Assembly (NCBI GenBank): GCA_002269645.1
Contig: NIVC01000225.1
Coordinates: forward strand, 350,416 to 414,415
Source: Macrostomum lignano
Taxonomy: Eukaryota
DNA: 64,000 nucleotides
Direction: 5' to 3'
Of this stretch, positions 10,499 through 62,158 are shown piece after piece (within the stretch, counting starts at the first letter, position 1; every line of letters starts with the position of its first letter). The position numbers and the translations under genes were made by a program. A model generated the notes under the pieces. That model made no database searches. It worked only from the letters and a program-made list of their open reading frames with translations, and was not told the origin of the DNA.

Positions 10499-12181
<1,683 letters not shown>

Positions 12182-15906: not shown

Positions 15907-16140
15907 ATAATGAGGTGGGGGCGGAGAAAAGTTTTCTTGGAAGTTGGTGGGTTTGTTGACACCAATGAGGTGGGTGGATTCTGTTTGAATTCCCACCGGC
16001 GTAGCGTTCGCACGAATAATCCGGAAAATCGCGCAGATGAATCACAACGAACTTCTTTCTCCTGTTTTACTCCGACTGCCGGGGTCCTCAAGTCCCGGGG
16101 GGAGGGCAGTCGTAATCGTAGCTGAGCGGTCGTTAACGGC
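15907..16140. repeat. Unclassified interspersed repeat, copy 1
   Basis: Shares ...GCGTTCGCACGAATAA..CCGGAAAATCGCGCAGATGAATCACAACG...GTCGTAATCGTAGC.GAGCGGTCGTT with 19825-20101. Confidence 0.8.
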
Positions 16141-19824: not shown

Positions 19825-20101
19825 ATATGAGGTGGGGCGGAGAAGAATTTTTTTGGTAGTTCTCGGTTTTGAAAATTTGCTGACACCAGTAGTGAGGTGG
19901 GGGTGGAGAAGATTTAAACTCTTGGGTTGAAGGTCGGCCGAAATTCTTCGAAACCGGTGGCGTTGCGTTCGCACGAATAAAACCGGAAAATCGCGCAGAT
20001 GAATCACAACGGAATTTCTTCTCCTTTTTCTCCGACTGCCGGGTTCTCAAGTCCGGGGGGGGAGGGTAGTCGTAATCGTAGCAGAGCGGTCGTTTAGCGG
20101 C
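19825..20101. repeat. Unclassified interspersed repeat, copy 2
   Basis: Homologous to 15907-16140. Confidence 0.8.
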
Positions 20102-21943
20102 TCGGGTCGTTCAAAGCGATGAAACACCGGAGATTTCTGGCTCCGTAAATTAATGCGCCGATGTGTTGAACTGGTTACTTTCAGTAGGGTAGTTGCTGCC
20201 ACCACCGTAATTTACGTATTACGGAACGGATAAGTCTCAGAGCTTTCTTTGAGATGAGAACTTGGTTATTTTACGCCCCACGGGCAAATGACTCAATAAA
20301 TGCTATGGCTTATGTCAACAGATTAAATATGATTCGGAATAAAGGTTTATAGGCTTGGTTTATTAATAATAATGCAGGCTTATGATTAGTAACTTTAATA
20401 TTTCAGACGACGGAGATGTTCACGGGCGCCGGTGCGCTAAATAACTTAGAAAATAACGAAAATTAGACTTAGTGAACCAAAAGGTAGATCAAGGAAACAG
20501 GGGGGGGGGGTCGAAGGCCAAAAGAGTTAGAAAACAACTCATCGTGCGCAGATTATAAATAAAGAGCGAATTACATGCACATCGTTTGGAAGATAAACTG
20601 GACAGGCCGATGGAGCAAAGTTTCAATGCGTGGAAACTTTGGGTGGACGGCTTGCCGCAAAGGAAAAAGAAGAAAACTTTAACAAAAATCCATCGCAAGG
20701 GAGCGCGTTTTAGCAACAAGTGGAAAACTAAAAACAGTGGCTGGACAGCCACTTGACGGAAAATGATGCGCCAAAATTCACTGGATGGATACGAAAAGTC
20801 AAAATTAATGTTTCTTGTGCATGCAACTTAGCGTAATTGTTTCATTAAGTTTTCATCAGTGGCACTCGACTGCCACACGCCCACACATAGGGTATGAATA
20901 TTAATTAGCCTGTCGACTTAGTCATTTCAGGGTTCAGTTTTACTGTTTTGCGGCTGCGGGGGGTAGTTTATTGGCAGTTGAGCAAAAATTAATTTTTTGT
21001 AGACTGTTTAATAAGTATATGCTAGTAGTTTAGTATTCATAAATGTTTGGTTTTAAGCTTGCAAAAAACAACTTTACCTTATTTACCCATCTTAGACTAA
21101 AAACATATAGATTCAGAACATACATGCACAACCCCCCTCCTGATTTACAATGGCCATGCAACTTACTTTTTGACCAAAAATGTGATACCTATAAATAGAG
21201 ACTCCGGCGAGCTCCGAGTAGCGTGGTTGAAACTAGAAAAAACGTACATTTAGCACCTACTTCAAACAGAAAACTAAGATAGAAAAAATATGACTGTGTA
21301 AAAACTGAAATACACAATAAAAAGCACAATAAATGTACTTCAAAATGAGTGCTCAAACAGCTTCTAAAGTCGATCAGAGACAAAGTTATGGACAGTTAAA
21401 GTTTCATCATTTTTGCATTCCCATGCAAAATGAAGCCTATTTTACGGTAAAAATCGTGACTTTGGAAAGTCTAATTTTTAATAACGAAATGACCGTTTTA
21501 AACAAAAATAATCAATATAAAAGCAATCTAGGCATAATTAAGTATCATTTTATGTAAATTTCAGAAGAAAAAAATATTCCCTGTTGCCTACAGGGGTAGT
21601 CCAAATTTTTTTCTTCGATTTCTTTGTATCATCCGATTGCTGCACGGAATTCAAATGTAAATTTCTTTATTCTTTGTTGCAAGTGGAAGGACATGCAGAA
21701 AACCGTTTGGGATTACCTAGTCGCGCATTGCTACTAAGTTGATTCAAAGATCATAGTAAAATCAAAGTAAATGTCTATTTAAAATATATTTTTTATTTTT
21801 TTTGAGAAAAAAAGAGACGCACAAATACAGTTGATATTGACTTTCATACATAATTGCATGACAAGTGTGAGGAATGAAAGTTCCTTCTGACAACTGACCG
21901 CGCACTTAGAAATATGAGCATCAATATGTTTCAGCGAGATTCA

Positions 21944-22006
21944 GGTAAACGGCAGGAGTAACTATGACTTTCAGTGCAAATGCAATTGCATCGTCACCTT
22001 ATTAGT
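21944..22006 (+). rRNA. Short degenerate 28S rRNA fragment (helix 69 / R2 and I-PpoI target region); not a functional rDNA
   Basis: GGTAAACGGCAGGAGTAACTATGACTTTC...TGCATCGTCACCTTATTAGT versus conserved 28S GGTAAACGGCGGGAGTAACTATGACTCTC...TGCCTCGTCATCTAATTAGT. Confidence 0.8.
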
Positions 22007-22599
22007 AGGAAAAATGAACATTTTTAAACTGTATTTTGTAAGTTAATTGCACTATGAAGTCAATACACACTGTCTTGAAATTCATTTCCATGATAACCAT
22101 TACAACTGCTGTCTTCAAGATGTGTACTCTTCTATTCTATGTACACATTGTACATGGGGGTCATATGAGAGGCTTCCGTTGGAAAGCTGCTGGATATCAG
22201 ACCCCAGCATAGTGATCCCAACAAGCGACCCCTGGCATTCGTCTGGTCAACGATGCAAACTCTCAAAAATGTATGGTATGTATGGTACAGAGTACCGTGG
22301 AACTGTTGCAATAGGTTTATGCCTGTGCAATAAAAGCAGGTAGGTGATTTTTTATATGGCATTGAAAAGCAGCCATTTTGTTTGAATGTCTTCTGACTTA
22401 TGCAGCTACTGAGTTAGCTAGATTCTTCATTGTAATAATGAGTGATTATTTTGGGTGCAAACTCTGAAGACTTAACATGCAAATACTAGCCTAGGTGCTA
22501 ATCTGTGTGGGAGATAGTACATAATATGAATCTCAGGCAACTACGTTTTGTGAACAGACCAAGCTGTGCTTGAAAAACTTTGTTAAACAATGAATACAC

Positions 22600-25500
22600 T
22601 TAGTCATCATCATCATCATAATCGTCATCGTCATCAGAGAGAACATTCAATTCGCCAGCCAGGTAGTCCTTGTTGAGGTCATAGGTGTACTCCCCTTCAA
22701 AATCATCGAACACAACCTTGAACTCCTGGCTGAGAATGTCCCTGCTCTGGCAGGTTGATGGCAGTCGCTGGAGGACGTGGCCTGGTATCCAGTCCTCCCC
22801 ATCTGTGAAGCAGAACTTCATCTCGATTCTTCTGCTCACCAGATCGGGGAGGTTGGCCAGCGTCCGCTGATTGGTGGTCTCGTCAATGGCGTCGCCCTCA
22901 TCCTCGTGTCTTCTTCCTCGTCCTCGTCCTCGTCCTCCTCCTTGACCTCGTCCTCCTCCTTGACCTCGACCTCGTCCTTGACCTCGACCTCGTCCTTGAC
23001 CTCGACCTCGTCCGCGTCCGCGACCGCCGCCTCGTCCACCAAGGCCAGGCCCAGCTTGAGCAGCCACAGCTCCTGCATCTTGAATCCGTTGACGACGCTG
23101 CAGCCTGTCAGCAATGGCAGTGCGGACTCGCTCCTTGCGCTCGCGAGCATCCAGGAGGCCGGACGGAGGCACGGTGGGCGCATCGGCACCCTTTTGCTGG
23201 TCCTGTAGTTCCACTATCTGCAGAACTTCACGCAGTTGGCTTCGCAGTTGAGGCACACTGCGCTTGACACCAGCCGCGGAGAAGTTGAGCAGGCTGGCCT
23301 TGTCCTTGGGCAGGTGGATCTCTACAAAATATTACATGAAACATAATTTTCATGCTAAGCAGTGAGCAAACAGACACATTTTTCTGCCCACACGTACTGG
23401 TCGCTTTGTGCAGTTGCAGCTGTGCTTTGATGGCCTTCTCGTGCTGGTCAGGGGCTAGTTGGTGCAGCACAGCGTCCATCCTGGAGATGGTTGGCCAGAG
23501 TCCGCCGTAGGCCTCGATGACACGGAGAATGGATCGGATGCTCTCGGCGTTCGAGTCCTTCTTGCGCTGCTTTTCAGCTAGCTTGGCGCGGAGAATCTCC
23601 TGGCGGCAGCTGCGCAAGGCGTCGGCGCTCTCCTTCCCTCGCTTTTCGAGCTGAGGGACCAGCTTCCGTGCCCTGGTAAGAAGGAGGTCCTTCTCGCGCT
23701 CCGTCTTGTCGGCCAGCCACTCGGACGTGCAGTTATAGCCGAAGAGCACAAGCGACTCGCGCGCAAGAGGGCGCATGTTGGGCCTGTCTGCGACGCACTT
23801 ATCCAGCATCCCGAAGCCTCGCTCGACTGCTACGTTGTCCTTAGGCGCAGATGAGACAAGCTGGGCAACTTCTGGCGTGAGCTGCCGCAGAGTGCCCCCA
23901 GGCAGGTGGTCACGCACCTCTCTCTCTAGCAACACAAGCATGTGTGTCGCCATGATCTGAAGTGGTGTTTTAAAGTATAAAAGCTACAATCTATACATTC
24001 GTTAATGTTCATTGATACTGTACTGTACTTTGTGACTAATCAGCGCATTCATAATTCAAAACCCATATTTACCTGCAGAGCCTGGCCGACAATCTCGTTC
24101 TCCAAGGCTGTCAGCTCAGACGTCAGCGCCGCCCAGATGTCCTGCAGCTGGATGTCCCGGAGAACCGTCTGGGCCAGTTCGGGAAATGGGCCAATCATGC
24201 TGCTGGCCACAGTAACGCCCTCGGACGATGACAGCTGGCGCAGCCAATTGCAAGCGCGCTCATAGCGTTCGTTCATGTCCGTGAGGGTCACGTCTCGGCA
24301 GCGCAGGAGCACCCACAGTGGCCGGATTAGCAGAACGTCAGCAATTCCGAGTGCACGGCAGCCACTCAGCAGCAAATCAGATGCCAAGTCAGCCTGCACT
24401 GCGATCAGCAGGCGGTTGCTGCAGGTGTACTCAGCCAGGAACTCGGACAGGCGGTCTCGCTGCCAGAAAATGTTTCCCCCGTTGGGAAATGTGATGTAGG
24501 CGCGGTTGCCACGGAAGTCGTCCAAACGAAGGGACGGTGCGCCCTTCGACTCCAGATACGTTTGAAGCGGAATCGCAACGCCACACTGTTCACTGCCCAG
24601 GGCATGGAACGCCTTGCAGACGGTGCGGATTAGACGCTGCGTGCCAGATTCAGCTTGGGACGGGCGGAAGCCAGGGAGGGCAGCAGATCCGACGGCCTCT
24701 GCAGCCATGCAAGTCTCCCACTCGCGCAGCGCAGCTTCTGCGGCAGCAGCAAGATTTACAATCACATGCATGCCGCAGAACAGTGCAGTCACAGGTGGAG
24801 GTGGGTTCACGCCTTGCTGGGTTGCCAGCTCCTGCCGCATCTCGTTGAGCAGTACGTTGAGGCACTTGTTGACCACGTGTCGGTCAGTCATTAGGAAGTT
24901 GACGCGTGCCAGTAGATTACACTTCAGGCGGCGTCTCTCTTCGTCGCTCGAGTGGGCAAGAACTACCGAGCAAAACAGATCGACCAGCTCTTCCACCGAG
25001 TAGTCCAGTTCGCGGGCGTAGATGTTCGCGGTGCCACCCTCGACCTCGCGAAGAGAAACAGCCATCGGGCGGCTGTCCCCAGTGTCAACCTATGAATGGT
25101 GCATATGTAATACAAAGCATATTGTGAATATAAAAGTTCATTCTTATTAACTAAAAGTTCTCTTTTTGTGAATATTAATAATAATAATTAATTATTAAAT
25201 TCATTTCCTTCCTTTAAGTCCAATTATTTGTCAATATGCACGAAAATGCATTACTCAAGTTTACCTGGTAGGCGGCATAGTGTCGGCCCTTCTTGCTGGT
25301 AGCATCATGCAAGATCGTTATTGGTCGGTCCTCCTTTGCCCCCTGATGCAGCAGCTTCTCCATCGCGCTCGCCTTAGCTAGGCAGCTGCCAAGGCTGTAG
25401 CTCAAAGCACTGACCTGCGAACGCGACGGAAGCGCCAAGTTGCCGGCGTCGATGCCAACGAGGTCCGTGAGGACGCGTCGAATCGCTGGCTTGACGTGCT

Positions 25501-26482
25501 GCACAGGGACGTGGCAGTCCAGCACCAAGTGCATACAGGTGCTGATGACCTGGTTCGTGTACTGCTGTCCTCCACTCGGACGTGATGTCTTGGTGATGAT
25601 GGAGCCCACACTCTGCTGTTGAAGCTTCTCGTTTGCTTCACAGATGAGGCCGTGCAAACTGCGGGTATCGGCTCTGAGCTCCTTCACTCTCTCAGTGGCG
25701 AGCTGACTTGACTTGCTACGGCTGTTGGCACGCCTCAAGCGCAGGTCACGCCTACGGCTGGCAGATGATGCAAAGGCCTGCCGCTTGGCATGCTCAGCAC
25801 GCAGCTTGTCGTATCTGCCTTGTAGCCGTCTGAGACGCTGATTCCAGACGCGAATTTCAGGCCGCTTGGCTAGCTTAGCCCTCAGTCGCCGGACTTCAGC
25901 TTTCTGCTCGGCCAGGGCGGCCTTCAGCTGCGCAACTTTGGCTTTGGCCTTGTGAACTCGCAGATCAACAATGGCTGCCTCGATGCCGATCTTCTCTTCG
26001 ACAGAGACACTCATGCCAGACTGCTTCGATTGGTCAAGCCTTGCTGGAGTCGGTGAGTTCGAGGCCATTGGCATTGGTGATGTTGACAAAGGCACAATCG
26101 GCATTGCCATTGGGTTCAACAGCTGTTGCAATGCCGCTGGAGGTTCGAATTCTCGTGCCAAATGGGCCTCATATGTCGAGATGCCATCACCAGACGCAGC
26201 CTCACGAGTGTGACTCTTCAGCAGAATTTGGGCTTCTCTCTCTAAATCCTTAATCCTTTTCAGGAGTGCCTTCTTCAGATTGTCAGAGACAAACTCCATC
26301 AAGTGAGAAGGTAGCCCAACCAGTTTCAGAATCGGCTGGGCCTTGTCAAGTCCTGTATGGGCCTGGCTGCTGGACTTGAGATGAGTAATCACCTGGCCAT
26401 TGGTGACTGGGCGAATGGATGATCTGGACCTGCCACGAAGCCGAAGGTTGGGCTTGGTCTTGGGTGTGGAGGATGTGGCCAT
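22600..26482 (-). CDS. DDE transposase (1,171 aa) with CxxH motif, RG repeat and C-terminal Spindlin-like Tudor domain; exons 26482-25265, 25089-24073, 23956-23398, 23321-22600
   Basis: Three GT-AG introns (phases 0, 0, 1) join four open frames without stops. Putative catalytic D (TILHDATS), D (FLMTDRHVVN), CxxH (LFCGMHV), E (DNVAVERGFGMLD). Confidence 0.9.
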
Positions 26483-27279
26483 AGATAGTATTGTTTAGTC
26501 AGTCAGTACTCCAGTAGTCTACTCCAGTGGCAGCTGGAATGGTAACATATTGATTGACTTACTGAGTTACTCAGGTGATTCAGTGCCAAATAAGTATGAA
26601 TATGTCTCATTATCAATAATGAGACATATAATTTATGTCTCAGTTATCAATAGTTTATAATATATTTGTAATATTTATAATAATATAAATAAACTTATAA
26701 TATATTATTTATTATGATACATTTAATTTTAATTTATAATAATATAATAAATATAATTTATTATGTTTTTTAAATTTAGTATAATAAATTTATAATAATT
26801 TATCAATAAAATCAAATTGTAGCTTTAAAAAGCATATGTATTGCCCCCGTGACCACACACAGTTATCATTTTTCCTATACTTAGTGCAAAATAACTTAAG
26901 AAGAAAGGACACCACTGACTTGCCTTGTACATAGCAAGCAAGGCAAGAAAAAAAGCAAAAAAATGACACCAAGAACAGCAAAATTGGTAATACAAAACGA
27001 AAGTTCTTGCTGGTCAACCACGAAAAAAACAAATATTTTGGAAAAAATGATCACAGCCCATAATGCAAATATCCCATAAGAGAATCCGCAAAAAATGGTC
27101 ACTAAAATGGCCACAACTTTCTTATTCCTTTACCAAATCTAATAATATAATACTTTTTGCAAACAAGAAAGTAAGATCTATCAGATAAGCATAAAAAATC
27201 TGTCAGACTTTTAACTTTCAAAATCTCACTGGAGTCCCTACTATAAAAGAAACCCTAAAGCAAAAATTAATGCAATTTT

Positions 27280-27341: not shown

Positions 27342-29341
27342 TTAATACTACATTTATGTTCCTATAGGGGCATTTTTGTGACTTACCCTTAGTCTACCAC
27401 AGTTTATAGAGGCTAAATCAGCCATGTTGGCCAGCAGTTGCATATGTATGATTCAGAATCTAAAAAATTGCCTTAAGGCAGAATATCTATCAGAGCATTA
27501 GCTATGACCCTCAAATCCCAATCATGCTCAGACTGAAAGAGAAACTCTCAATAAGAGCAAACATAAATGTTAAATTAGAATATATATGAAATAGGAATAA
27601 ATATAATGCTACAAGACTGCTTAGGCCTTAGGCCAATATTACTAATATATAATATCCTATTGATTCTAAATGAAATGCTACTAGTATATAATAAAGTATT
27701 AAAAGTGCATCCAAGTATTATGTTAGAAAATAGCCTAGACAAGCCAAGAAAGAAAGCAAACTCTTATAAAAACTTTAATGATAGCTATGGGATAATTTTA
27801 AGTGGGTAAAATTATAATACCACTTTTGTGACATTGGGGTCAACAATTAGATTCATAAAAAGCAAATTAAACCTCTAAGTACTTTATTGCATTTTATAAT
27901 GATTTTTAAATTAAAGCTTACATCATTTTTTCAATTTTAAAAATACAAGTGCTCCTATTTTTGTGAGTGTCACAGTTTTTTTAAAGCCATTTCTATGAAA
28001 ATTTAGTTTGTTGTTATTGCATTAAAAACTAGATAAATATATTCAAACAGTTTTTCTCTATGACAAAGTATTTTTTCTCTTTTGTCTAGTTTATTTAATT
28101 TGCTTAATTTAGGGTCTATTCTAAGTGACTACATTCCAAAGTTATTCATTCACAAAAACCTACTCTTTACTAAAAGTTGTATTCTATATGCATATTGGCA
28201 AGTCATGGGGCCCTTACTAAAGTCCCTACCAATATGTTGAATATGATACAGGGTCTAACTTATAATACCTAGTATTTTTTAACTAAGTCAAGGCTTTTGC
28301 ATGGGCTAGCCTAATCTTAATGCCCAAACACTGCTTTTTATTTCTAACTAAGCTATATAGTTATATTGTATTTTTTAGGTATTATGCATTATAAAATCAA
28401 CTATATACATTAATTAAATGATTTAAGCCTAATATTTATGCCTTAGGCCTATGTCTATTAGGTAGTAAGATAGTATAAGTGTTGAGGTATTTTGAAGTAA
28501 TAAGAAATTTTCTTCTAACTTTAAATTGAATTAAACTTAATAAATTGAAATTTTTATCCAACAAGAAAAACTAAGTTGAAAAACTAACTGCATTAACTCA
28601 AAAATTTTGCCTTTATTACCCCAATCACAATGACAATGTGCTTGTGGCATATAAAATATTTTTTGAGTTCTTGACCCTAAAGACTTAAGAGCTTCTCTTG
28701 CATTGAAAATAAAAATATTCATCTCAACTTCAGCATCTATCAACATATTTACATAATACCATTATATATGTTGAGTAAAAAAATTAAATATTAAACTTTT
28801 AAATCAAATATTCAATTTCAATATGCAGATCAGGTGGCTATCTTCTAGTTTTTTTAATAGAAATTGGGCTTTAATTGAAATTTACAATAAATTAGATTCT
28901 ACTTCATCTGTAATTATTCTTATTAATTAATTTATTTGAGCTTATCATATTTACTTTATTTCTACAACCATATATACATACCATTGCCAATGAAAACCCA
29001 CATATGAGTTGACACACCCAATCATTGTTCACTAGGCTCTCAGTTATTATCAAACAAATTTCTTAGTATTTAGTATTTCAGTCTTCAAAAATTGTAAATA
29101 TCCTGATTAAAACTACTACTACTAGTGCTTGTACAACCTGCTAATTACATGTCTATTTATTACCTTTGTTTTGTTTGTTATTTAACATGTTTAATTAGCT
29201 TTATTTTTGTTATTATTACATACATAGGTTTCATAAAAACCTATGTTGCTGCTGACAATGGCTGATATGATTTATAAAGCAAGCATAAACAGTGCCTGTA
29301 TTTTTCATTCTAACTTTGCAGGATAATTGTTAGCAGCAACC

Positions 29342-30025
29342 ATGCATTACATTGTACTAGTTGCTGGAGGCTCATTCAATCCAGTCACTAATATGCACCT
29401 GCGCATGTTTGAATTAGCCAGGGATGCTTTAATTAAAACTGGCCAATTCAAAGTCCTTGGCGGTATAGTGTCCCCAGTGTCTGACGGATATAACAAGCCC
29501 GGCTTATTGCCTTCTAAGCATCGGATTGAGATGCTCAAACTGGCTCTGGGCAGAGGCGGCTGTAGCGATGGAATTCCTAGCAGTTGGATACGGCTGGGCA
29601 CATGGGAGGCTGTTAGATCGCAATGGACTCCAACTAGGAAAGTGTTGGATCATTATCAGCGCAGAATTGATGCAATGCTGGCTGACACTGATGAGGCTCA
29701 GTTGAATGGACCGCCAGATGGAAAGCGGTCAAGAATCGGTGTGTAAAAACCTTCTATCTTTCTAGAAATCGGCAAACTTTCTTTACCTAGCTAATGTAAC
29801 AGAAGATTAGAGATGAGAAAAGAGAAATTTGTTAATTTTATGATTTTTTAGATGAAGAATCTGACGAGCTCGCTTGGTTGCGCAGTCTGGTGGCCAAGCT
29901 GCGAGCCAAGGAGAGCCAACCAGATGTCCGCATCATGCTGCTGTGCGGTGGCGACGTGTTGCAGAGCTTCGCTGTGAAAGGCGTCTGGCAGGAGGAGGAC
30001 GTGAGTTCTGTTCTGTCTGTCTGTC

Positions 30026-30088
<63 letters not shown>

Positions 30089-30339
30089 GTCTGTCTCTGT
30101 CTGTCTGTCTGTCTGTCTGTCTGTGTCTGTGTCTGTCTGTCTGTGTCTGTCTCTCTGTCTGTCGGTCTGTCTCTGTCTGTCTGTCTGTGTCTTTCTGTCT
30201 GTCTCTCTCTCTGTCTGTCTGTCTGTGTCTGCCTGTCTGTGTCTATCTTTATGTCTGTCTGTCTGTCTGTGTCTGTTTGTCTGTCTGTCTGTGTGTCTGT
30301 CTGTCTGTCTGTCTGTATGTCTGTCTGTCTGTCTGTCTG

Positions 30340-30370
<31 letters not shown>

Positions 30371-30415
30371 ATATATATCTATCTATCCATCTATCTATCT
30401 ATATATCTATCTATC

Positions 30416-30459
<44 letters not shown>

Positions 30460-31105
30460 CATCTATATATCTATCTATCTATCATGCAGATGGTGTCGAT
30501 CGTGCGCGATTACGGCATGGTGGTGCTGTCTCGGCCCGGCTCCGATCCGCACAGGTTTGTGCACACCTTTGATCTCATCAATCCTTATGAGGTGAGCGAT
30601 ACACTCTAAGCTATCTATCTGATTTGATGATTTAGCGATCCTTTCATCCTGTTCCACCCCTATCTATCCTGTCCCACCCCTATCTATCCTGTCCCACCCC
30701 TATCTATCCTGTCCCACCCCTATCTATCCTGTCCCACCCCTATCTATCCTGTCCCACCCATATCTATCCTGTCTATCCCCCCTGTGCCTCAACCTTATCT
30801 ATGGCAGGATATTTACCCAGCGAACGCAAAATTTTGCAGCGCAACATTCGCCTAGTGACCGAGTGGGCAGTGAATGACATCAGCTCAACGCTGATTCGTC
30901 GCACTCTGCAACGCAACGAAAGCGTTCGTTACATGCTACCCGATCCTGTCATAGATTATATCTATCGCAATGGGCTGTACGGAAGTACTGCCTCTTGGCC
31001 TAGGTACGTTGCTTTCTGTTTTATAATATTGAAATTTAATCACTTAAAGCTTAGTAAGTTTTAGTCTGTTCTTTGCCTTTCAGATTGGAAAACTTTGCCG
31101 ACTAA
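29342..31105 (+). CDS. NMNAT: Nicotinamide/nicotinate mononucleotide adenylyltransferase (277 aa); exons 29342-29738, 29852-30000, 30490-30591, 30840-31003, 31084-31105
   Basis: [51 protein letters not shown] motifs; splice phases 1/0/0/2 consistent; basic PPDGKRSR insert in the targeting region. Confidence 0.95.
30011..30483. repeat. Bipartite (CTGT)n-(CTAT)n microsatellite forming almost all of NMNAT intron 2
   Basis: Direct. Confidence 0.95.
30655..30780. repeat. 20-bp tandem repeat (CCCCTATCTATCCTGTCCCA) in NMNAT intron 3
   Basis: Direct. Confidence 0.9.
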
Positions 31106-31370
31106 ATATTGTGTTGTTGCCGATGTTTTGCCTTGTGAATGCCTCACACTAAATAGAGATGTTTTACTGACATAGATGTTACTCATAATTGAAGCTTTTT
31201 ACTTTATATTCATGTAGTATGACTGCTTCTTGACAGGCCTTCGGTCAGTTGATTATTATTAAAAATTAATACTTTGATATTTTTAAGTTCGTCGACTGTT
31301 TAAAACTACTTTTGTTTTCTATTTGCATTTCTTTAGATTCTTTGTTTCTGGTTTTATAGTGCTGCTAACA

Positions 31371-32695
31371 TCTGTGTTGTGTCATCTAGTGCTACCCTCC
31401 TCTGTGTGTCACCTAGTGAGTTGCTACCCTCCTCTGTGTGTCATCTAGTGAGTTTCTACCCTCCTCTGTGTATGTCATCTAGTGAGTTTCTACCCTCCTC
31501 TGTGTATGTCATCTAGTGAGTTTCTACCCTCCTCTGTGTGTCACCTAGTGAGTTGCTACCCTCCTCTGTGTGTCATCTAGTGAGTTGCTACCCTCCTCTG
31601 TGTGTCATCTAGTGAGTTTCTACCCTCCTCTGTGTATGTCATCTAGTGAGTTTCTACCCTCCTCTGTGTATGTCATCTAGTGAGTTTCTACCCTCCTCTG
31701 TGTGTCACCTAGTGAGTTGCTACCCTCCTCTGTGTGTCATCTAGTGAGTTTCTACCCTCCTCTGTGTATGTCATCTAGTGAGTTTCTACCCTCCTCTGTG
31801 TATGTCATCTAGTGAGTTTCTACCCTCCTCTGTGTGTCATCTAGTGAGTTTCTACCCTCCTCTGTGTGTCACCTAGTGAGTTGCTACCCTCCTCTGTGTG
31901 TCATCTAGTGATTTTCTACCCTCTGTGTGTCATCTAGTGATTTTCTACCCTCTGTGTGTCATCTAGTGATTTTCTACCCTCCTCTGTGTGTCACCTAGTG
32001 ATTTTCTACCCTCCTCTGTGTGTCATCTAGTGAGTTTCTACCCTCCTCTGTGTGTCATCTAGTGATTTTCTACCCTCTGTGTGTCATCTAGTGAGTTTCT
32101 ACCCTCTGTGTGTCATCTAGTGAGTTTCTACCCTCCTCTGTGTGTCATCTAGTGAGTTTCTACCCTCCTCTGTGTGTCATCTAGTGATTTTCTACCCTCT
32201 GTGTGTCATCTAGTGAGTTTCTACCCTCCTCTGTGTGTCATCTAGTGAGTTTCTACCCTCCTCTGTGTGTCATCTAGTGATTTTCTACCCTCTGTGTGTC
32301 ATCTAGTGAGTTTCTACCCTCCTCTGTGTGTCATCTAGTGATTTTCTACCCTCTGTGTGTCATCTAGTGATTTTCTACCCTCTGTGTGTCATCTAGTGAT
32401 TTTCTACCCTCCTCTGTGTGTCACCTAGTGATTTTCTACCCTCCTCTGTGTGTCATCTAGTGAGTTTCTACCCTCCTCTGTGTGTCACCTAGTGATTTTC
32501 TACCCTCCTCTGTGTGTCATCTAGTGAGTTTCTACCCTCCTCTGTGTGTCATCTAGTGATTTTCTACCCTCTGTGTGTCATCTAGTGAGTTTCTACCCTC
32601 CTCTGTGTGTCATCTAGTGAGTTTCTACCCTCCTCTGTGTGTCATCTAGTGATTTTCTACCCTCTGTGTGTCATCTAGTGAGCTTCTACCCTCCT
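31371..32695. repeat. Minisatellite, ~32-bp unit (TGTGTGTCATCTAGTGAGTTTCTACCCTCCTC)
   Basis: Direct. Confidence 0.97.
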
Positions 32696-33089
32696 GAAAT
32701 GAGTTTCAATTTTGCTTTGCAACGAAAGTTTTTGCTTAATACCATGACTTTACTTTTGTATTTGTTAATTCTTACATCTTTGACCTGTTGTCTTTTAGAG
32801 ACTTAGTCTAGCTAAAAGTGCAACTCTTGCCTTCTAAGCACCCAAATTTCAAAATTAGGGCGTTAACCGTAAGTTTCATATTTTGCCAAGCGTTCTGGTG
32901 TGCAATTTAATAATAAAATAAGTTGTTTTTGTTCTATCACCAATATATTAGCAGATGAGCTTTTCTGAAATACATTCTTTTAATCACAGCCATACTAGGC
33001 ATGCATAAGAAGAGAGCGTTGCTATTCTCTTTTTCCAATACTTACCTAATCAACTTACTAATACGTATTCCCAATGCCTGTTTTAATTC

Positions 33090-34347
33090 CTCACTCAAAT
33101 CCCCACTCAAATCCCCACTCAAATCCCTACTCAAATCCCACACTATTTCAAATCCCCACTCAAATCCCACACTATTTCAAATCCCCACTCAAATCCCACA
33201 CTATTTCAAATCCCCACTCAGATCCGACACTATTTTAAATCCCCACTCAAATCCCACACTATTTCAAATCCCCACTCAGATCCGACACTATTTTAAATCC
33301 CCACTCAAATCCCTACTCAAATCCCACTCTATTTAAATCCCCACTCAAATCCCCACTCAAATCCCACACTATTTCAAATCCCCACTCAGATCCGACACTA
33401 TTTTAAATCCCCACTCAAATCCCTACTCAAATCCCACTCTATTTAAATCCCCACTCAAATCCCCACTCAAATCCCACACTATTTCAAATCCCCACTCAGA
33501 TCCCACACTATTTTAAATCCCCACTCAAATCCCACACTATTTCAAATCCCCACTCAGATCCGACACTATTTTAAATCCCCACTCAAATCCCACACTATTT
33601 CAAATCCCCACTCAGATCCGACACTATTTTAAATCCCCACTCAAATCCCTACTCAAATCCCACTCTATTTAAATCCCCACTCAAATCCCCACTCAAATCC
33701 CACACTATTTCAAATCCCCACTCAGATCCCACACTATTTTAAATCCCCACTCAAATCCCACACTATTTCAAATCCCCACTCAGATCCCACACTATTTTAA
33801 ATCCCCACTCAAATCCCTACTCAAATCCCACACTATTTAAATCCCCACTCAAATCCCCACTCAAATCCCACACTATTTTAAATCCCCACTCAAATGCCTA
33901 CTCAAATTCCAATTTTTTTCTTCAAATCCCCACTCAAATCCCACACTATTTTAAATCCCCACTCAAATGCCTACTCAAATCCCAATTTTTTTTCAAATCT
34001 CTACTTAAATCCCACAGCATTTCGAATCCCCACTCAACTCCCACAGCATTTCAAATCCCCACTCAACTCCCACAGCATTTCAAATCCCCACTCAACTCCC
34101 ACAGCATTTCAAATCCCCACTCAACTCCCACAGCATTTCAAATCCCCACTCAACTCCCACAGCATTTCAAATCCCCACTCAACTCCCACAGCATTTCAAA
34201 TCCCCACTCAACTCCCACAGCATTTCAAATCCCCACTCAACTCCCACAGCATTTCAAATCCCCACTCAACTCCCACAGCATTTCAAATCCCCACTCAACT
34301 CCCACAGCATTTCAAATCCCCACTCAACTCCCACAGCATTTCAAATC
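33090..34347. repeat. Minisatellite built from AAATCCCCACTC subunits (~29-bp higher-order unit), switching variant near 34010
   Basis: Direct. Confidence 0.95.
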
Positions 34348-34395
34348 GTGACCCTGCAAAAAGCCAATTGCCAGCTGTTCCTCCAAAGCCGATCC

Positions 34396-35259
34396 ATGGT
34401 GGTGCTACTCCGGTTAATTCAACGCTGCAGCGGCGGCGGCAGCAGCGGCGGTCGCAGCGGCGACACGGACGCCGACACAGATTTATACGGCCCGGCGGAG
34501 GCTGTCCTTTTTGCCATTGGCCAGCCGTTTCGCGTGTTGCAGACTCTGGCATTGGCTTCTGGGGGAGATTTTTCTGTTGCGGTGTCCTCAGCTCGCCCCG
34601 CCTTGTCTGCCCTGGTGCTGACCGGCCTGCCTGTGGGTCTCCTCTGCGACTGCCTGCTCACAGCCGGCCTGCAGCTCTCCTTGCAGCGGCCGCCCATTCC
34701 TACGCGATCTGCTTCGAGAAACCAGCAGCAGCAGCAGCAACAGCAGCAGCAATCGTTCTTCTCTTTGAACACGGCTCGTCTTCTAGGCTTCAATGCCTAC
34801 GCCTGTTTGGTGACTCAACCGCTGCGGGTGCTGCAGCTGCGCCAGCTGCTCAGCCTGACCGCCGGCTCCGCCTCGGTGTCCGTCCTGACCGCCGCTCGCG
34901 CCGTCTACGCCGAGAACGGCTGGCGCGGCTTCTTTGCCGGCTTTGCCGGTCGGGCGCTTCGGCACTGCTCCCTGGTGCTGGCCTTCCTGGCGGCTGCTCG
35001 CCTGCGGCGCTGGCTGCTGGCGCGTCGCGCCGTGGCGCCGCCGAAGCCGCTGGCTGGCGCGCCTAGTAGAGTGGTTTTTCCTTCGGCGGTGTACTGCCTG
35101 GCTGGCCAGCTGCTGCACCCGCTGGCGGCCTGGGAGGTGGCCACAGTGGCCGCGGCGGCGGCCGCCGCTGTACCCTCTGCCGTGTCGCTGTTCCCCCTGT
35201 CGTATTCTTGCGCTCCGGTGCAATCGGCTGTGCGTATTTTAGCCGAGATGAGGCGCTAG
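34396..35259 (+). CDS. Divergent mitochondrial carrier-family protein (SLC25; MTCH/SLC25A46-like), ~287 aa; start uncertain
   Basis: Degenerate carrier signatures QPFRVLQ, QPLRVLQLRQ, HPLAAWE and AARAVYAENGWRGFFAGF; GC-rich codon usage; poly-Q insert. Confidence 0.6.
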   Translation: MVVLLRLIQRCSGGGSSGGRSGDTDADTDLYGPAEAVLFAIGQPFRVLQTLALASGGDFSVAVSSARPALSALVLTGLPVGLLCDCLLTAGLQLSLQRPPIPTRSASRNQQQQQQQQQQSFFSLNTARLLGFNAYACLVTQPLRVLQLRQLLSLTAGSASVSVLTAARAVYAENGWRGFFAGFAGRALRHCSLVLAFLAAARLRRWLLARRAVAPPKPLAGAPSRVVFPSAVYCLAGQLLHPLAAWEVATVAAAAAAAVPSAVSLFPLSYSCAPVQSAVRILAEMRR

Positions 35260-35357
35260 AGATCTGCGGTGCAGTTTCTGATAAACTAGTAAATGATTGA
35301 GAGCTTGGTTTGCCTTCGATTGAAGAGAAAAGCTTTGTTGCGTCTCCCCCCCCTATC

Positions 35358-36337
35358 ACCTCAATGATCCATCTAGAATCGCCCCCTCATATATCCATCT
35401 AGAATCGCCCCCCCCCCTAAATGATCCATCTGGAATCGCCCCCCCCCTAAATGATCCATCTAGAATCGCCCCCCCCCCTAAATGATCCATCTGGAATCGC
35501 CCCCCCCCTAAATGATCCATCTGGAATCGCCCCCCTCCCCTAAATGATCCATCTAGAATCTCCCCCCTCAATGATCCATCTAGAATCGCCCCCCCCCCCC
35601 AATGATCCATCTAGAATCTAGAATCGCCCCCCTCCCCTAAATGATCCATCTAGAATCGCCCCCCTCCCCTAAATGATCCATCTAGAATCGCCCCCCCCAA
35701 TGATCCATCTAGAATCGCCCCCCCCCAATGATCCATCTAGAATCTAGAATCGCCCCCCCCCAATGATCCATCTAGAATCGCCCCCTCAATGATCCATCTA
35801 GAATCGCCCCCCTCAATGATCCATTTAGAATCGCCCCCTCAATGATCCATCTAGAATCGCCCCGCCTCAATGATCCATCTAGAATCGCCCCCTCAATGAT
35901 CCATTTAGAATCGCCCCCCTCAATGATCCATCTAGAATCGCCCCCCTCAATGATCCATCTAGAATCGCCCCGCCTCAATGATCCATCTAGAATCGCCCCC
36001 TCAATGATCCATCTAGAATCTAAAATCGCCCCCACCCCACTAAATGATCCATCTAGAATCGCCCCCCCCTAAATGATCAATCTAGAATCGCCCCCCTCAA
36101 TGATCCATCTAGAATCGCCCCCCCCCCCTAAATGATCCATCTAGAATCGCCCCGTCTCAATGATCCATCTAGAATCCCCCCTCAATGATCCATCTAGAAT
36201 CCCCCCTCAATGATCCATCTAGAATCCCCCCTCAATTATCCATCTAGAATCCCCCCTCAATTATCCATCTAGAATCTCCCCCCCCCCCTCAATGATCCAT
36301 CTAGATTTGCCCCCAATGATCCATCTAGAATCGCCCC
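35358..36337. repeat. Minisatellite, ~28-30-bp unit (AATGATCCATCTAGAATCGCCCCCCT)
   Basis: Direct. Confidence 0.95.
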
Positions 36338-42209: not shown

Positions 42210-44929
42210 ATGGCGAACATTTCCCCTGTGTATAGTGTTTCCCTTGCTATTAAGCAAGAAATCCAACGCTTCGAAAGTGTTCATCCTAGTATTTATGCCA
42301 TTTATGATTTGATTGAAGCAATAGATGATCGTGAACTACAAGACAGTATTCGTGATCATGTTGTTTGCATTGAAGGTAAGCTGAAGTTGAGGTTTTATAT
42401 AAGTTGCTATATTTTTGTTTTTTTGTTTTACTCCTCAACTTTACACAGTATATAATTGTAAAGGACTTCAGTGAGATGCACAGTAATTATGACAAAGTTG
42501 AAATGTCAAAAGACCATTTTCCTAATATTTTAAAACTATAGAATAGATTAGCTATAAGTATAACTATAAGTATTGCAAAGAAAAACAGATAATAAATTAG
42601 AAATTTGGCCTATTTTATAAAACTTCTTGGCACTTGTTATTTTAACAGTAACTAAAATAAATAAATACTGGTTTTATATATTTTAGAACTTATAGCTAGG
42701 TATCACATTTGACTAGCCACAAATCTATCCTTTTAAAGGCAAGTAAATTGCATTTTTAAGAACCCTGTGTACTTTGCATTATTAGGCCTAAAAGTATGAG
42801 CCTAAAATCCATGAGTTAGTTTAAACTTATTGGTCCCAGGTCAATTCGGTGACAAGACATTTCGGTGACAACAACTTCGGTGACAACTTGGGATGTTTCG
42901 GTGACACCAGTGGTCAATTCGGTGACAAGCTTTTTAGACTTGATTTGACTATTTTTCGTTGTTAAATATTAATATATATAAGCTGTTAATATAAACTCTT
43001 ATTAAAGTAATAAAGGTTCGTATGCTATCTGCAATTATCATTTTGTTCGAGTGCGTTTCGAGGCATAACATTTACAGCGCGCACTTAATTTTATCCCTAC
43101 TTTTAATTTTTCAACCCAAGTCAACGACAATTGATTATTAGATTTTTTGTACTATATCTACATGTACATGTATTGTAGATGTACATGTACGTCTTAAAAG
43201 CCATTGAATGAGTTCAGAAAACAACTGTATATCTATAGCGTAGCTTATGACTGTACATGTTTTTATGTGCTAATTCAGGGACTATAAGGCAAGGGGCGCC
43301 AATAGGGGCGGACATACCCGCGGATAGAGCTTGATAGAACTTATTGAGCCCCCAAAAACCTAAGTTTGCACCCTTTAAACTAGATTTTTCGCCTCCTACA
43401 CGCATTTTTTGCACCCCTAGCTTTAAAATTGGCACCCCTCATACTCATGAATTATTGGCGCCCAAAACTTGGACCAACGCCCCGGCCCCCTTCGGCCCCC
43501 AAATGAAATTCTAGATCCGCTACTGTATGTGGGTCACTGGTCAAATCGTCATATTCCATTTCGTCATATCGGATGACAAAGTGACCAGAAGCAAAGTAGC
43601 TTTGAAAAATAATATGACGAAGTGACCAAATATTTAGTTATGCTGGATACTTCGTCATCAAACCAATCAATCTGTGTGAGATTCGAGTTAGTGTAAACTA
43701 TTTTTGTCTTTATTAACTATAAGCTGCGGCAAGCAGAATCGATCGATCAACAGGTTCTATCAATCGAGATGTCAAAATGACTGGGATGATTAGGATTCCA
43801 TGTAAATATGTTTAATTGCCACATCAATTCACTTGGAAGTTGGAACTGGTGGATGACGAAATGACTCTCTTGAGGTAGTGCATGCAAATCAAGATGACGA
43901 AGTGACCCTAGTCGAGGTGGACACCCCAGACACCCCAGATGACAAAATGGCAGATGACGAAGTGACTAGGAACCTGTATGTGCGCCTCACAGAGTATAGA
44001 TTATGGGTGAGTTGGCTTGAAATTTATCATATAATTAATTTTGGCGCTTATTGACAAAGCTGTACTGTGAACTTATGGTTGTGGCGATCGTGACCATGTT
44101 AACATAAACACATGTGTACAAATGTAAAGTCATACAAAACTTGGTCTTCTACATTTAGTAAATGAATAACACTTATTTGTTCATTCAGTAACACAGTTAA
44201 GTGAATGTGATAATTATACTATACAAGCTGTTGAAACCTGCGGATTTTGAACCCGGGGAATTCCAATACCCGGAACTACTTTTGCATGTATTCTGAAATC
44301 TAAGGCCATACACAAACAAAAACTTGTTAATAGTTAGTAGGATAGAGGTAGACATAAAATGGAGCACATTCGAGTAAAATTAGGGTTTGAGACATTGTTG
44401 GCTGGGGTACTGCGCAGAATGTCAAGCAATGTCTGTATGACTCTAAAACATATTGCTAAACTCTGGCCTCTCCCTGACTCTCCCTATGTCCCTTGGATCC
44501 TTTAAAATTTCTATCGTCTCTTCTGTTTCCTCTCATCTCTCTCGTCCCTCGTCTCTCCTCTCTCCTCTCTCCTCTCTCCCCTCTTCTCTCGTATCTTCCC
44601 TCATCTCTCTTCTCTTTCATCTCTCTTATCTCATCTCTTGTCTCTTCTTTTCTCTCTCCTCTCCTCTCTCCTCTCTACTTTTTCGTTTTCTCTCTCCTCT
44701 CCTCTCTCCTCTCTCCCCTTCTCCTCTCTCCTCTCACCCCCTCTTCTCTCTGATCTTCATTCTCCTTTCTATTCTTTTCTCTCTTCTCTTAACTCTCTCC
44801 TCTACTCTCTCATCTCTCCCCTCTTCTCTCGCCTCTTCCCTCACCTCTTTTTCTCTCTCGTCTTTGCTCTCTCATCTTTCCTTTCTCTTATCTTATCTCT
44901 CTTATCTCTTCTCATTTCTCTCTACTCCC

Positions 44930-60000: not shown

Positions 60001-62158
60001 CCCCAGATAGCAAGCACCCCCCAGATAGCAAGCATCCCCCAGATAGCATGCAAGCATCCCCCAGATAGCAAGCATCCCCCAGATAGCAAGCATAAAGTAT
60101 TTAGATGTGTGTTTATAAGTATTTGGATGTGTGTTTAGCTATGATTATTTGTATCTGTTTATCTCTGAGATGTGTAGTGTGTTCATCGGGCTTCAAGAGC
60201 GGCGTTTTCGTGTGCGTAAGTATTCAATATGTTAATCTGGGAAATTATAAACATGTGTTTACTGATGTGTTTAGTTATATGTGTTTAGTCACGTAACTCT
60301 TGCTATTCTGTGACGCTTTCCTAGAAATGTACTTCCCATATTTATCTTTGCTATCGCACCTTCACACTTTATTTACAAAAAAATTAATATATTTTCTACT
60401 GGTTTTTTTCTGTTGGAGCTAGCTGCACCCTCAACCCAATCATTACTCAGGAGAAGTCGGACAAGGACGCCACCCCGAATGCCACCCCGACTCAGAACCG
60501 GAAGAACAAGCGCCGCTCAAATCTGTTCAACCGGAAGGACTCGTCAAATCCACCCGAGGAGCAGCAGCAGCAGCAGCAGATCCCAGCTACTATGCAGCAG
60601 CAGCAGCAACAGCAGGGTAAATTCTTCCCATTGTCGTCATCCTCAAACGCCGGCAACCGAGTCGGCCCTCCGCTGGGCTCCGGCCGGGCGATCCCCGTTA
60701 AGCAAGGCAGCCTGTACAAGAAGGCGGTGAACGCTCTCAACAGGGAATGGAAGAAAAAATACGTCACCCTGAGCGAGGACGGCAAGCTCACTTATCATCC
60801 CAACCTGCACGACTACATGGAGAACAGTCACGGCAAAGATATCGACCTCAGTCGGACCACTGTGAAGATTCCCGGCCAGCTGCGACCGACATCTAACGGC
60901 CTGCTCAAGTCGCAGCAGCAGCAGCAGCAGCAGCCGGAGGACGGCAATAAGAAGCGCCGGCATCGACGAGCAAAGTCCGGCAATCGGGGAGGCGGCGGCG
61001 GAGGCGCTGATCAGGATGTCGAAGAGTCGGACGGCTACGAGTTCATGATTGTGTCGCTTGAGAATCGAACTTGGCACTTTGAGGCTGCCAGTCAAGAGGA
61101 GCGGGATGAATGGGTGAGTCTGTCTGGGAATTCCTGTTGGCTGGTGTCATTGTTTCTAGTGATTTCTCATCGATTTCTCAGAACCTATCCTACGATTTCT
61201 CATATCTCATAGTCTACCCCACGATTTCTCACAGTCTGTCCCATGATATCTCACAGTCTATCGCATGATATCTCACAATCTATCCCATGAGATATCACAG
61301 TCTATCCTATGAGATATCACCGTCTATCCCATGAGATAACACAGTCTATCCCATGAGATATCACAGTCTATCCCATAAGATATCACAGTCTATCCCATGA
61401 GATATCACAATCTATCCCATGAGATATCACAATCTATCCCATGAGATATCACAGTCTATCCCATGAGATATCACAGTCTATCCCACGAGATATCACAGTC
61501 TATCCCATGCTGTCGCGGCTTCGCTCCCCCAGGTCCGCGCCATCGAGCACTCCATTCTGCGCAGCCTGCAAGGCCCGTCAGCCTACGGCAACTACGGCAC
61601 CAGCGGCGGCTCGTCGAACTGCCTCGCCGGCGGCGGCGGCAGCGGCGGCGGCGGCAGCGGCGGCGGCAGCTCCGGCAGCGGCTCAATCCGTGGCGTGTTC
61701 GGCAACTCGGAGTGCGCGGACTGCGGCCGGCCGGGCCCGGACTGGGCCAGCCTGAACCTGGGCGCGCTGGTGTGCATCGAGTGCAGCGGGGTGCACCGCC
61801 AGCTGGGCACGCATCTCAGCCGCATCCGGTCGCTCACGCTGGACGATTGGCCGGCAAATCACCTGCTGGTGATGCGGGCCATTGGCAACAAGCTGGCAAA
61901 CTCTGTGTGGGAGGCCCGCCTGCCCTGTCACGCCACGTTTCGCAAGCCCAGCCCAGAGTCGGATCGGGAGGCCAAGGAGATTTTCATCCGGGCCAAGTAC
62001 GAGCGCCGGGAGTTCCTGCCGGATCTGCCGTTTAGGGACAGCCCCGTGCAGCAGCAGCTGGTGGATGCTATAGCCAGATCTGACACCAGACAGGTGCGGT
62101 TCTTTTTGTCTGTCTGACTGTCTGTCTGACTGTCTGTCTGTCTGTCTGTCTGTCTGTG

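Follow-up and report, generated by a model that had tools for sequence, protein, structure and literature searches.

Mobile elements that read chromatin marks are known mainly from long terminal repeat (LTR) retrotransposons, through their chromodomains, and from retroviruses, through the host tethers that they use; for DNA transposons the evidence is, to our knowledge, sparse. Chromodomains tether the integration of chromoviruses to marked chromatin, the sponge Ephydatia has fusions of hAT transposases with Chromo domains (CBX/CDY), and Chromo and PHD domains make up most of a survey of transposon-reader fusions, the text of which has 0 occurrences of Spin (Grau-Bove et al., bioRxiv 10.1101/2021.11.30.470311). 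A C-terminal Tudor domain on the retrotransposon Gypsy-10_Ec32 of Ectocarpus is, to the knowledge of its authors, the 'first reported' (Genome Biol 2025, PMC12477816). Capture of chromatin readers by mobile elements is already an established theme, to which the locus described here adds a Spin/Ssty case. The DNA under study is a stretch of 64,000 nucleotides of the flatworm Macrostomum lignano (assembly GCA_002269645.1, contig NIVC01000225.1, positions 350,416 to 414,415, forward strand), referred to as the window, and the element of interest is a predicted transposon of ~6 kb on it. We favour the reading, with a rough probability of 55%, that the C-terminal exon of its transposase encodes a Spin domain whose aromatic cage binds a methylated histone tail and biases integration.

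The locus shares features with several described systems and differs from each. The chromoviruses (Ty3/gypsy, e.g. MAGGY) likewise pair an integration enzyme with a C-terminal methyl-lysine reader of the Royal family, a likeness that would extend to targeting; they are LTR retrotransposons with a chromodomain, whereas here a DNA transposon carries Spin/Ssty. Gypsy-10_Ec32 is also a transposable element with a Tudor-type reader, but it is an LTR retrotransposon of a stramenopile (brown alga), in contrast to an animal DNA transposon with an Asp-Asp-Glu (DDE) transposase and the Spin/Ssty subtype. The sponge fusions share the union of a DNA transposase with a chromatin reader and differ in being taxonomically restricted and built on Chromo/PHD, while the present fusion spans flatworm, amphioxus and fish. 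Spindlins (SPIN1-4) hold three tandem Spin/Ssty repeats, against a single one at the extreme C-terminus in this transposase family. The pairing of arginine-glycine (RG) repeats on PIWI with the extended Tudor domains of TDRD proteins also combines an RG repeat and a Tudor-family domain in one system; the Tudor subtype is another one, however, and here both parts lie on one polypeptide and the RG part is lineage-specific. Full-text literature searches (outside Repbase, Dfam and subscription journals) that paired Spin-Ssty, Ssty or Spindlin with transposase, transposon or hAT returned nothing relevant, and the union of a DDE DNA transposase with a Spin/Ssty reader, kept across animal phyla, appears to be undescribed. 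Despite its name, the hAT family 'SPIN' (SPace INvaders) has nothing to do with the Spin domain.

The transposase gene occupies four exons on the minus strand and encodes 1171 amino acids (aa); its exon joins are canonical GT-AG with the frame kept, and the protein is 100% identical to UniProt entries of M. lignano. From the N-terminus, the predicted order is a helical domain with a coiled coil, a DDE core with an insertion domain, a long helical region, a basic linker, the Spin domain and an acidic tail. Exon 4 begins behind an AG acceptor (23322-23323) with a phase-1 junction in frame with exon 3, and the public models P0001 and P0003 have the same exon 3/4 junction. Its stop codon (22602-22600) comes right after the acidic tail; such tails also follow the Spin domain in the M. 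lignano paralogs, in P0122 and in P0015. The original prediction, made from the letters of the window, had placed an RG tract, a Spindlin-like segment and a poly-Asp tail here and had assigned the exon to the transposase. All three sequences are found as described, at the coordinates claimed and on the minus strand, and the assignment agrees with the splice sites and frame, with the junction of the public models and with intronless relatives that carry core and Spin domain in one unbroken open reading frame (ORF).

By homology, the C-terminal segment is a diverged but genuine single Spin/Ssty Tudor-like repeat, its membership following from profile-profile comparison and from homology through relatives. 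As a single sequence, the 14 top matches of the domain in the PDB (phmmer) were all Spindlins, 12 of them Spindlin-1 chains (E=0.0085-0.019), which is marginal. Smith-Waterman alignment against SPIN1 repeat 2 gave z=10.4, a score reached by 0 of 500 shuffles, and two paralogous domains gave z=6.9 and 10.6 against SPIN1, whose sequence was verified against PDB 7e9m. When the three M. lignano paralogs were compared with the three SPIN1 repeats by hhalign, a probability of 96% was obtained (P=4.8e-9, score 48.1), with a mean score of 10.1 and a maximum of 17.4 in 150 column-shuffled control alignments.

The relatives extend this result in both directions. A profile of 54 family domains from outside the recognised Macrostomum group finds the exon-4 ORF among 723 six-frame ORFs of the window with E=1.3e-14, the runner-up standing at E=1.4, and conversely the Macrostomum profile matches the C-termini of relatives down to E=9e-15. 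The solved structures of Spindlin-1/2/3/4 are matched by a family profile of 94 sequences (E=8e-21 to 1e-18), which aligns to each of the three repeats. The gathering cut-off of the Pfam Spin-Ssty model PF02513 (25 bits) is passed by seven relatives: P0064 and P0055 (47.9 bits), P0115 (47.0), P0113 (44.0), P0087 (43.1), P0067 (32.8) and P0138 (29.3). After the Spindlins, the next-best matches of the domain are MBT repeats and not TDRD proteins. Neither the domain alone nor the three-paralog alignment gave matches in word-indexed homologue searches, a matter of index sensitivity and not of absence. The proposal of a Spindlin-like Tudor domain on the transposase C-terminus is borne out by the hhalign result and by the profile of the relatives.

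The Spindlin repeat that best matches the window domain is SPIN1 repeat 2; the two are homologous, with ~30% identity over 63 columns, the same strand register and aligned cage positions. The four aromatic positions read as F/W/F/Y in the first description are confirmed by the computed alignments, in which F1101, W1109, F1136 and Y1143 stand opposite SPIN1 F141, W151, Y170 and Y177, and SPIN1 D184, G188 and D189 stand opposite D, G and E. In the paralogs the cage reads F/W/F/F and F/W/F/V, and over 58 family domains it is largely kept, as given position by position in Table 1. SPIN1 repeat 2 is a reader of H3K4me3, and SPIN1 repeat 1 reads methyl-arginine (H3R8me2a). Owing to the homology to repeat 2 and the retained equivalents of D184 and D189, an H3K4me3-like mark would be the best guess for the ligand. 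In the mechanism that we infer, the aromatic cage would bind a methylated histone tail, this binding would tether the transposase or the transpososome to marked chromatin, and the tethering would bias the integration sites of the element as chromodomains do on chromovirus integrases. That methyl-mark reading serves to choose insertion sites, as originally suggested, is plausible on this analysis.

The fusion of core and Spin domain is ancestral to a large animal transposon family and widespread in it; neither this wide distribution nor the single-repeat state of the domain figured in the original prediction. Exhaustive HMMER searching with a profile of the M. lignano proteins returned 2247 cluster representatives at a threshold of E<=1e-3, of which 1044 pass E<=1e-10 and 274 pass E<=1e-30. 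The Spin domain is present in 73 of the 153 retrieved proteins and in 55 of the 99 members of at least 650 aa, and it ends at most 45 residues from the C-terminus in 68 of the 73. Named relatives are uncharacterised proteins of Branchiostoma lanceolatum (amphioxus) and Lepisosteus oculatus (gar). The three M. lignano paralogs are just 41-46% identical and all have the RG tract, the Spin domain and the acidic tail after the core.

The protein is a transposase, as had been proposed, with a Hermes-like fold, a DDE triad accompanied by CxxH, and terminal inverted repeats (TIRs) flanked by target-site duplications (TSDs). This call rests on fold, motifs and element ends, because sequence profiles of the core match no transposase: the ~700-aa core hit no Pfam family in ~25 members scanned and no solved structure by sequence, and core profiles of 4 and 94 sequences retrieved no transposase from the PDB, just coiled coils and Spindlins. 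In the family alignment H514 never varies, conservation at D393, D475, C511 and E790 is 90% or higher, and the consensus of the core includes the motifs DGTxKxG, MSDR, FFCGLHxLV and NxxxERDF. The AlphaFold model built from the 94-sequence alignment has a mean predicted local distance difference test (pLDDT) score of 86.9, exceeding 90 across residues ~300-960. The succession of strands and helices is that of RNase H: D393 sits on strand 1, D475 comes after strand 4 and CxxH after strand 5, and beyond these lie an all-alpha insertion domain and then E790 in helix 787-802. With Foldseek, the top 10 matches in the PDB were all Hermes (hAT; E=6.5e-7 to 1e-4, 567-606 aligned columns); rank 11 was the P element transposase (E=0.011), ahead of RNase-H enzymes of the IS256, retroviral and mariner types. 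In the N-terminus (window 26401-25613) a helical domain (aa 28-122) is modelled confidently and is followed by long coiled-coil helices (aa 161-290), and neither a BED nor a THAP zinc finger was detected there. Both the catalytic triad and the ORF of the window copy are intact.

With the core compared with Pfam and the PDB, the element is filed as hAT-related, in an unnamed clade, on account of its fold, the CxxH and E-R-x-F motifs and its YARNG-like ends. Hermes is the best fold match (~570-600 columns) and shares the DDE triad with CxxH, the all-alpha insertion before the catalytic E and the E-R-x-F motif. TIRs of hAT elements begin with YARNG, which fits the window (TAGGG/TAGAG) and the paralogous locus L003 (TAGGG), whereas L001 and L005 (TAGGC/TAGAC) are off at the fifth base. 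Unlike in hAT, the TSD is of 7 bp and not 8, and an 8-bp reading failed in all four perfect cases (CTATAAA, CCTATAA, GTATAAT, TTAAAAG). Two further departures from Hermes are the N-terminal coiled coil and the Spin domain at the C-terminus, and no BED zinc finger was found. The Pfam scans of ~25 members gave no match to the hAT models (dimerisation domain PF05699, DUF659, BED finger), and profiles of 4 or 94 sequences gave none to Hermes; the UniProt entry P0006 is named 'DUF659 domain-containing', and hmmscan did not reproduce DUF659.

P elements have 7-8-bp TSDs and an N-terminal coiled coil, and the P superfamily resembles the present element in TSD length and as the second-best fold match, but no THAP domain was found here and the match is weaker than that of Hermes (E=0.011 vs 6.5e-7). 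The Dada superfamily, described as having no TIRs, a DxxH motif, CCCC and CCHC zinc fingers, small-RNA-gene targets and a 6-7-bp TSD, was rejected, the element having TIRs, the CxxH motif and AT-rich non-genic targets, with zinc fingers not found. A bolder classification, which we put forward tentatively and at less than even odds, is that the family is as yet undescribed and forms a deep branch related to hAT, possibly with the rank of a superfamily, across animals, marked by TAGG... TIRs, 7-bp TSDs, a core without a Pfam model and an ancestral Spin/Ssty methyl-histone reader.

Window positions 21196-27240 form, by ends and coding content together, a structurally complete element of 6,045 bp, predicted to be an autonomous cut-and-paste DNA transposon. 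Its ends are of the TAGR...CCAGTGAG type, as in the paralogous elements of loci L001, L002 and L003, and an unbiased scan of the window for TAG...CTA ends with a perfect 7-bp TSD returned this pair alone. The TIRs were located through the motif of a paralogous element whose ends were defined from two 99.9% identical copies; a generic inverted-repeat search around the gene missed them (13/16 match, no 10-nt seed). These two 7.3-kb copies (L001:4593-11882 and L002:4593-11883) stand in unrelated flanks with perfect 7-bp TSDs of their own, CCTATAA and GTATAAT, and end in TAGGCTGTCCAGTGAG...CTCACTGGACAGTCTA, with TIRs matching at 15/16. They carry the paralog P0004, a transposase 46% identical to that of the window, in which a one-base frameshift is needed between the core ORF and the RG+Spin ORF; this may be a real mutation or a long-read indel error.

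Locus L003 holds another autonomous paralog, the third, with TIRs of 16/16, and next to it a non-autonomous element of 2,008 bp (L003:15477-17484) that has perfect 16-bp TIRs equal to the window 5' TIR, the perfect TSD TTAAAAG and just ~33 terminal bases in common with the window element. This short element sits inside a span called as a DnaJ gene (L003 14370 onward). A distant relative, P0083 (22% identical), is encoded by an intronless 1125-aa ORF in a 6.9-kb unit (L005:117-6976, also L006 and L007) with TIRs TAGGCATTCCACA(C/T)GA and the imperfect flanks ACTAAAC/TTTAAAC; two NCBI assemblies and an ENA metagenome contain the sequence of this unit with 100% identity.

The RG tract has a different distribution from the domain that follows it. 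Its DNA is an 18-bp tandem repeat (5.4 copies, 93% matches, window 22916-23013), for which reason its length probably changes by slippage, and the tracts of the paralogs differ in length and sequence. RG tracts at the matching position occur at loci L001 and L003 and in P0122 and P0009. At least five RG dipeptides in the last 260 residues are found in P0122 and P0009 alone of the 153 listed proteins, a tally in which the public models of the window are uncounted since the tract is spliced out of them. Nine C-terminal tails read by eye have RG just in the Macrostomum group, the other linkers being Lys-rich, resembling a nuclear localisation signal, or RG-free. Among the representatives checked, the tract was seen only in the Macrostomum group. 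The survey of related transposases for an RG+Tudor architecture, proposed at the outset, therefore upholds the Tudor half (73/153) and not the RG half, and the idea that the two are coupled as a feature of the system has to be given up, the Spin domain being family-wide. It follows that the ancestral role of the Spin domain cannot be the binding of its own methylated RG tract. We infer that the tract, which takes the place of the Lys-rich linker of several relatives, is most likely a basic linker particular to this lineage that serves to import the protein into the nucleus and/or to bind nucleic acid non-specifically, a role possibly tuned by arginine methylation, RG repeats being classical substrates of PRMTs.

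Several observations weigh against a methyl-reading Spin domain that guides this element. PF02513 gives no score to the exon-4 ORF or to the three paralog domains even at E<=10; the suggested HMMER check against Spin-Ssty is accordingly negative for the window sequence itself and positive for the seven relatives (29.3-47.9 bits). The single-sequence AlphaFold model of the C-terminal 97 aa has five strands at pLDDT 43, and Foldseek matches on it were noise, which is why the fold of the window domain is taken from homology. Unlike SPIN1 repeat 2, the domain is single, fused to a transposase and beyond the reach of the Pfam model; the Macrostomum domains hold a 7-aa insertion between strands that is not in SPIN1, and SPIN1 E142 is not conserved, with Cys at this position in the window. 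In the UniProt models P0001/P0003 the RG tract and the domain's first strand are treated as intron (window 22800-23110), with ...ADRLQR joined directly to HGEDWIPG and ...QEFK leading to a different end (IST), and this loss with the truncation of the Spin domain may be alternative splicing or mis-prediction. The 3' TIR of the window departs from the family TIR at 3 positions, so that this copy may have lost its mobility. All five M. lignano insertions are in AT-rich DNA (23-33% GC) with TATAA-like TSDs, and a sequence or open-chromatin preference could explain the choice of site with no reader involved. Several insertions were judged to lie within ~1-2 kb of gene 5' ends (L003 gene calls and one window ORF), an anecdotal observation that fits a sequence or open-chromatin preference equally well.

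Part of this counter-evidence would suit a Spin domain that has become a structural or protein-interaction module, no longer reading methyl marks and instead binding a host factor or aiding transpososome assembly. No more than 23 of 58 family domains have aromatics at all four cage positions, the residue of P0004 opposite Y177 is Val, E142 is not conserved, and Spindlin repeat 3, a Spin repeat for which we know of no methyl ligand, offers a precedent. The most diagnostic positions are nevertheless strongly kept across flatworm, amphioxus and gar, with Y or F opposite Y170 in 98% of the domains and D opposite D184 in 88%, and the window domain has all four aromatics; we regard such a module as unlikely. 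A stronger doubt is in order for an autoinhibitory or oligomerisation switch in which the Spin domain would bind the PRMT-methylated RG tract of its own protein, either in cis or across subunits, and gate activity or assembly. P0122, P0009 and all three M. lignano paralogs do combine the RG tract with the Spin domain and the acidic tail, and the methyl-arginine reading of SPIN1 repeat 1 and the PRMT preference for RG repeats would fit, but RG-rich tails are found in two of the 153 listed proteins against 73 with a Spin domain, several relatives have a Lys-rich linker instead, and the tract is a young 18-bp tandem repeat of varying length among paralogs. The autoinhibition put forward in the original prediction thus finds no support in a lineage-specific tract, and a methyl-RG/Spin switch would be at most a secondary, lineage-specific addition.

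The same tract figured in a further suggestion, that RG repeat and Tudor-like domain mimic or titrate PIWI (RG) and its TDRD partners and so shield the element from silencing. A formal likeness of parts, nothing more, speaks for this; the best matches are Spindlins and then MBT repeats instead of TDRD proteins, the RG tract is lineage-specific, and the Spin/Ssty repeat differs from the extended Tudor type that reads symmetric dimethyl-arginine on PIWI, so the decoy is unsupported and we consider it very improbable. Domestication, by which the M. lignano genes would be a small family of transposase-derived, chromatin-binding host proteins, draws on the presence of introns, two positions of which look shared between paralogs (tblastn block boundaries), on the few copies and the three changes in the window 3' TIR, and on a coding GC of 51-55% vs ~35% in the flanks. 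It is hard to reconcile with intact TIRs and perfect TSDs, an intact catalytic triad, two 99.9% identical copies in unrelated flanks and a non-autonomous derivative with the same TIRs, and is in our estimate distinctly unlikely. That the resemblance is due to chance or mis-annotation, with no real Tudor-like domain or with exon 4 outside the transposase, could be argued from the negative single-sequence Pfam scan and from public models that skip part of exon 4; it is refuted by the profile results and by the same ORF and protein in paralogs and intronless relatives, and its probability is close to negligible. The reading of the Spin domain as a methyl-histone reader that biases integration is accordingly retained as the preferred one.

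Table 1. Coordinates of the transposon, its transposase gene and neighbouring host genes in the window, with conservation of the cage positions.
Feature	Position in window	Strand	Remark
TSD left, CTATAAA	21189..21195	.	identical 7-mer at both termini
3' TIR TAGAGACTCCGGCGAG	21196..21211	+	13/16 match to 5' TIR
3' subterminal non-coding part	21212..22599	-	between stop codon and 3' TIR
Exon 4	23321-22600	-	aa 932-1171 + stop; helical linker, RG tract, Spin/Ssty domain, acidic tail
Acidic tail SDDDDDYDDDDD	22603..22638	-	read directly; contains DDDDDYDDDDD
Spin/Ssty Tudor-like domain, single, ~75 aa	22636..22875	-	
Segment LVSRRIEMKF...GELNVL in Spin/Ssty domain	22842-22639	-	aa 1092-1159
Y1143	22689-22687	-	cage
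F1136	22710-22708	-	cage
W1109	22791-22789	-	cage
F1101	22815-22813	-	cage
RG/RGG tract	23040-22909	-	44 aa, aa 1026-1069
Exon 3	23956-23398	-	aa 746-931; catalytic E790 (23824-23822) within PKDNVAVERGF
Exon 2	25089-24073	-	aa 407-745; D475 (24885-24883), C511/H514 (24777-24766), all-alpha insertion domain
Exon 1	26482-25265	-	aa 1-406; N-terminal helical domain, coiled coil, catalytic D393 (25306-25304)
5' subterminal non-coding part	26483..27224	-	between 5' TIR and start codon
5' TIR TAGGGACTCCAGTGAG	27240-27225	-	identical to both TIRs of the 2-kb non-autonomous L003 element
TSD right, CTATAAA	27241..27247	.	
F141 position			F or W in 43/58 family domains
W151 position			W in 43/58 family domains
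Y170 position			Y or F in 57/58 family domains
Y177 position			aromatic in 47/58 family domains
D184 position			D in 51/58 family domains
Tubulin ORF	10499-11746	-	host gene
Cytidylyltransferase-like (NMNAT-type) exon	29327-29746	+	host gene, ~2.1 kb from 5' end of element
PH-domain ORF	60592-61212	+	host gene

Around the element the window holds repeats of several kinds. A dispersed repeat lies just outside the 3' end of the transposon (window 19958-20335) and again at L003:18001-18381, near the locus of the third paralog, with 84-88% identity, and within the window it also pairs 20000-20101 with 16038-16140. Positions 30007-36000 are dense in tandem repeats, namely TCTG/TCTA microsatellites and then satellites of 20, 32/154, 29 and 27/61 bp, and window tandem repeats give rise to spurious long ORFs, e.g. 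29874-30609 and 33894-35066. Two 16-mers at most 3 mismatches from the family TIR, TAGGGACTTTAGTAAG at 28228-28213 (-) and AAAGGACTTCAGTGAG at 42460-42475 (+), were found without a partner or TSD, a count close to chance expectation.

Should the family prove to be a deep-branching hAT relative with an ancestral reader, its enzyme would be the first DDE DNA transposase with a Tudor-type reader, and nature would have supplied a system in which chromatin marks direct DNA transposition. Because its core has no Pfam model and is recognisable by fold alone, thousands of animal proteins now called 'uncharacterized' could be annotated. A further possibility is that the triple repeat of vertebrate Spindlins and the Spin domain of the transposon share a donor-recipient history, although the transposon origin of Spindlins raised in the original prediction finds no support in the present results. 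If the domain binds a histone methyl mark, the element would lend itself to a simple and testable model of how marks guide cut-and-paste integration, could serve as a natural template for targetable transposon vectors in a flatworm for which transgenesis exists, and would add one more case to what is known of the passage of Royal-family readers between mobile elements and host genes.

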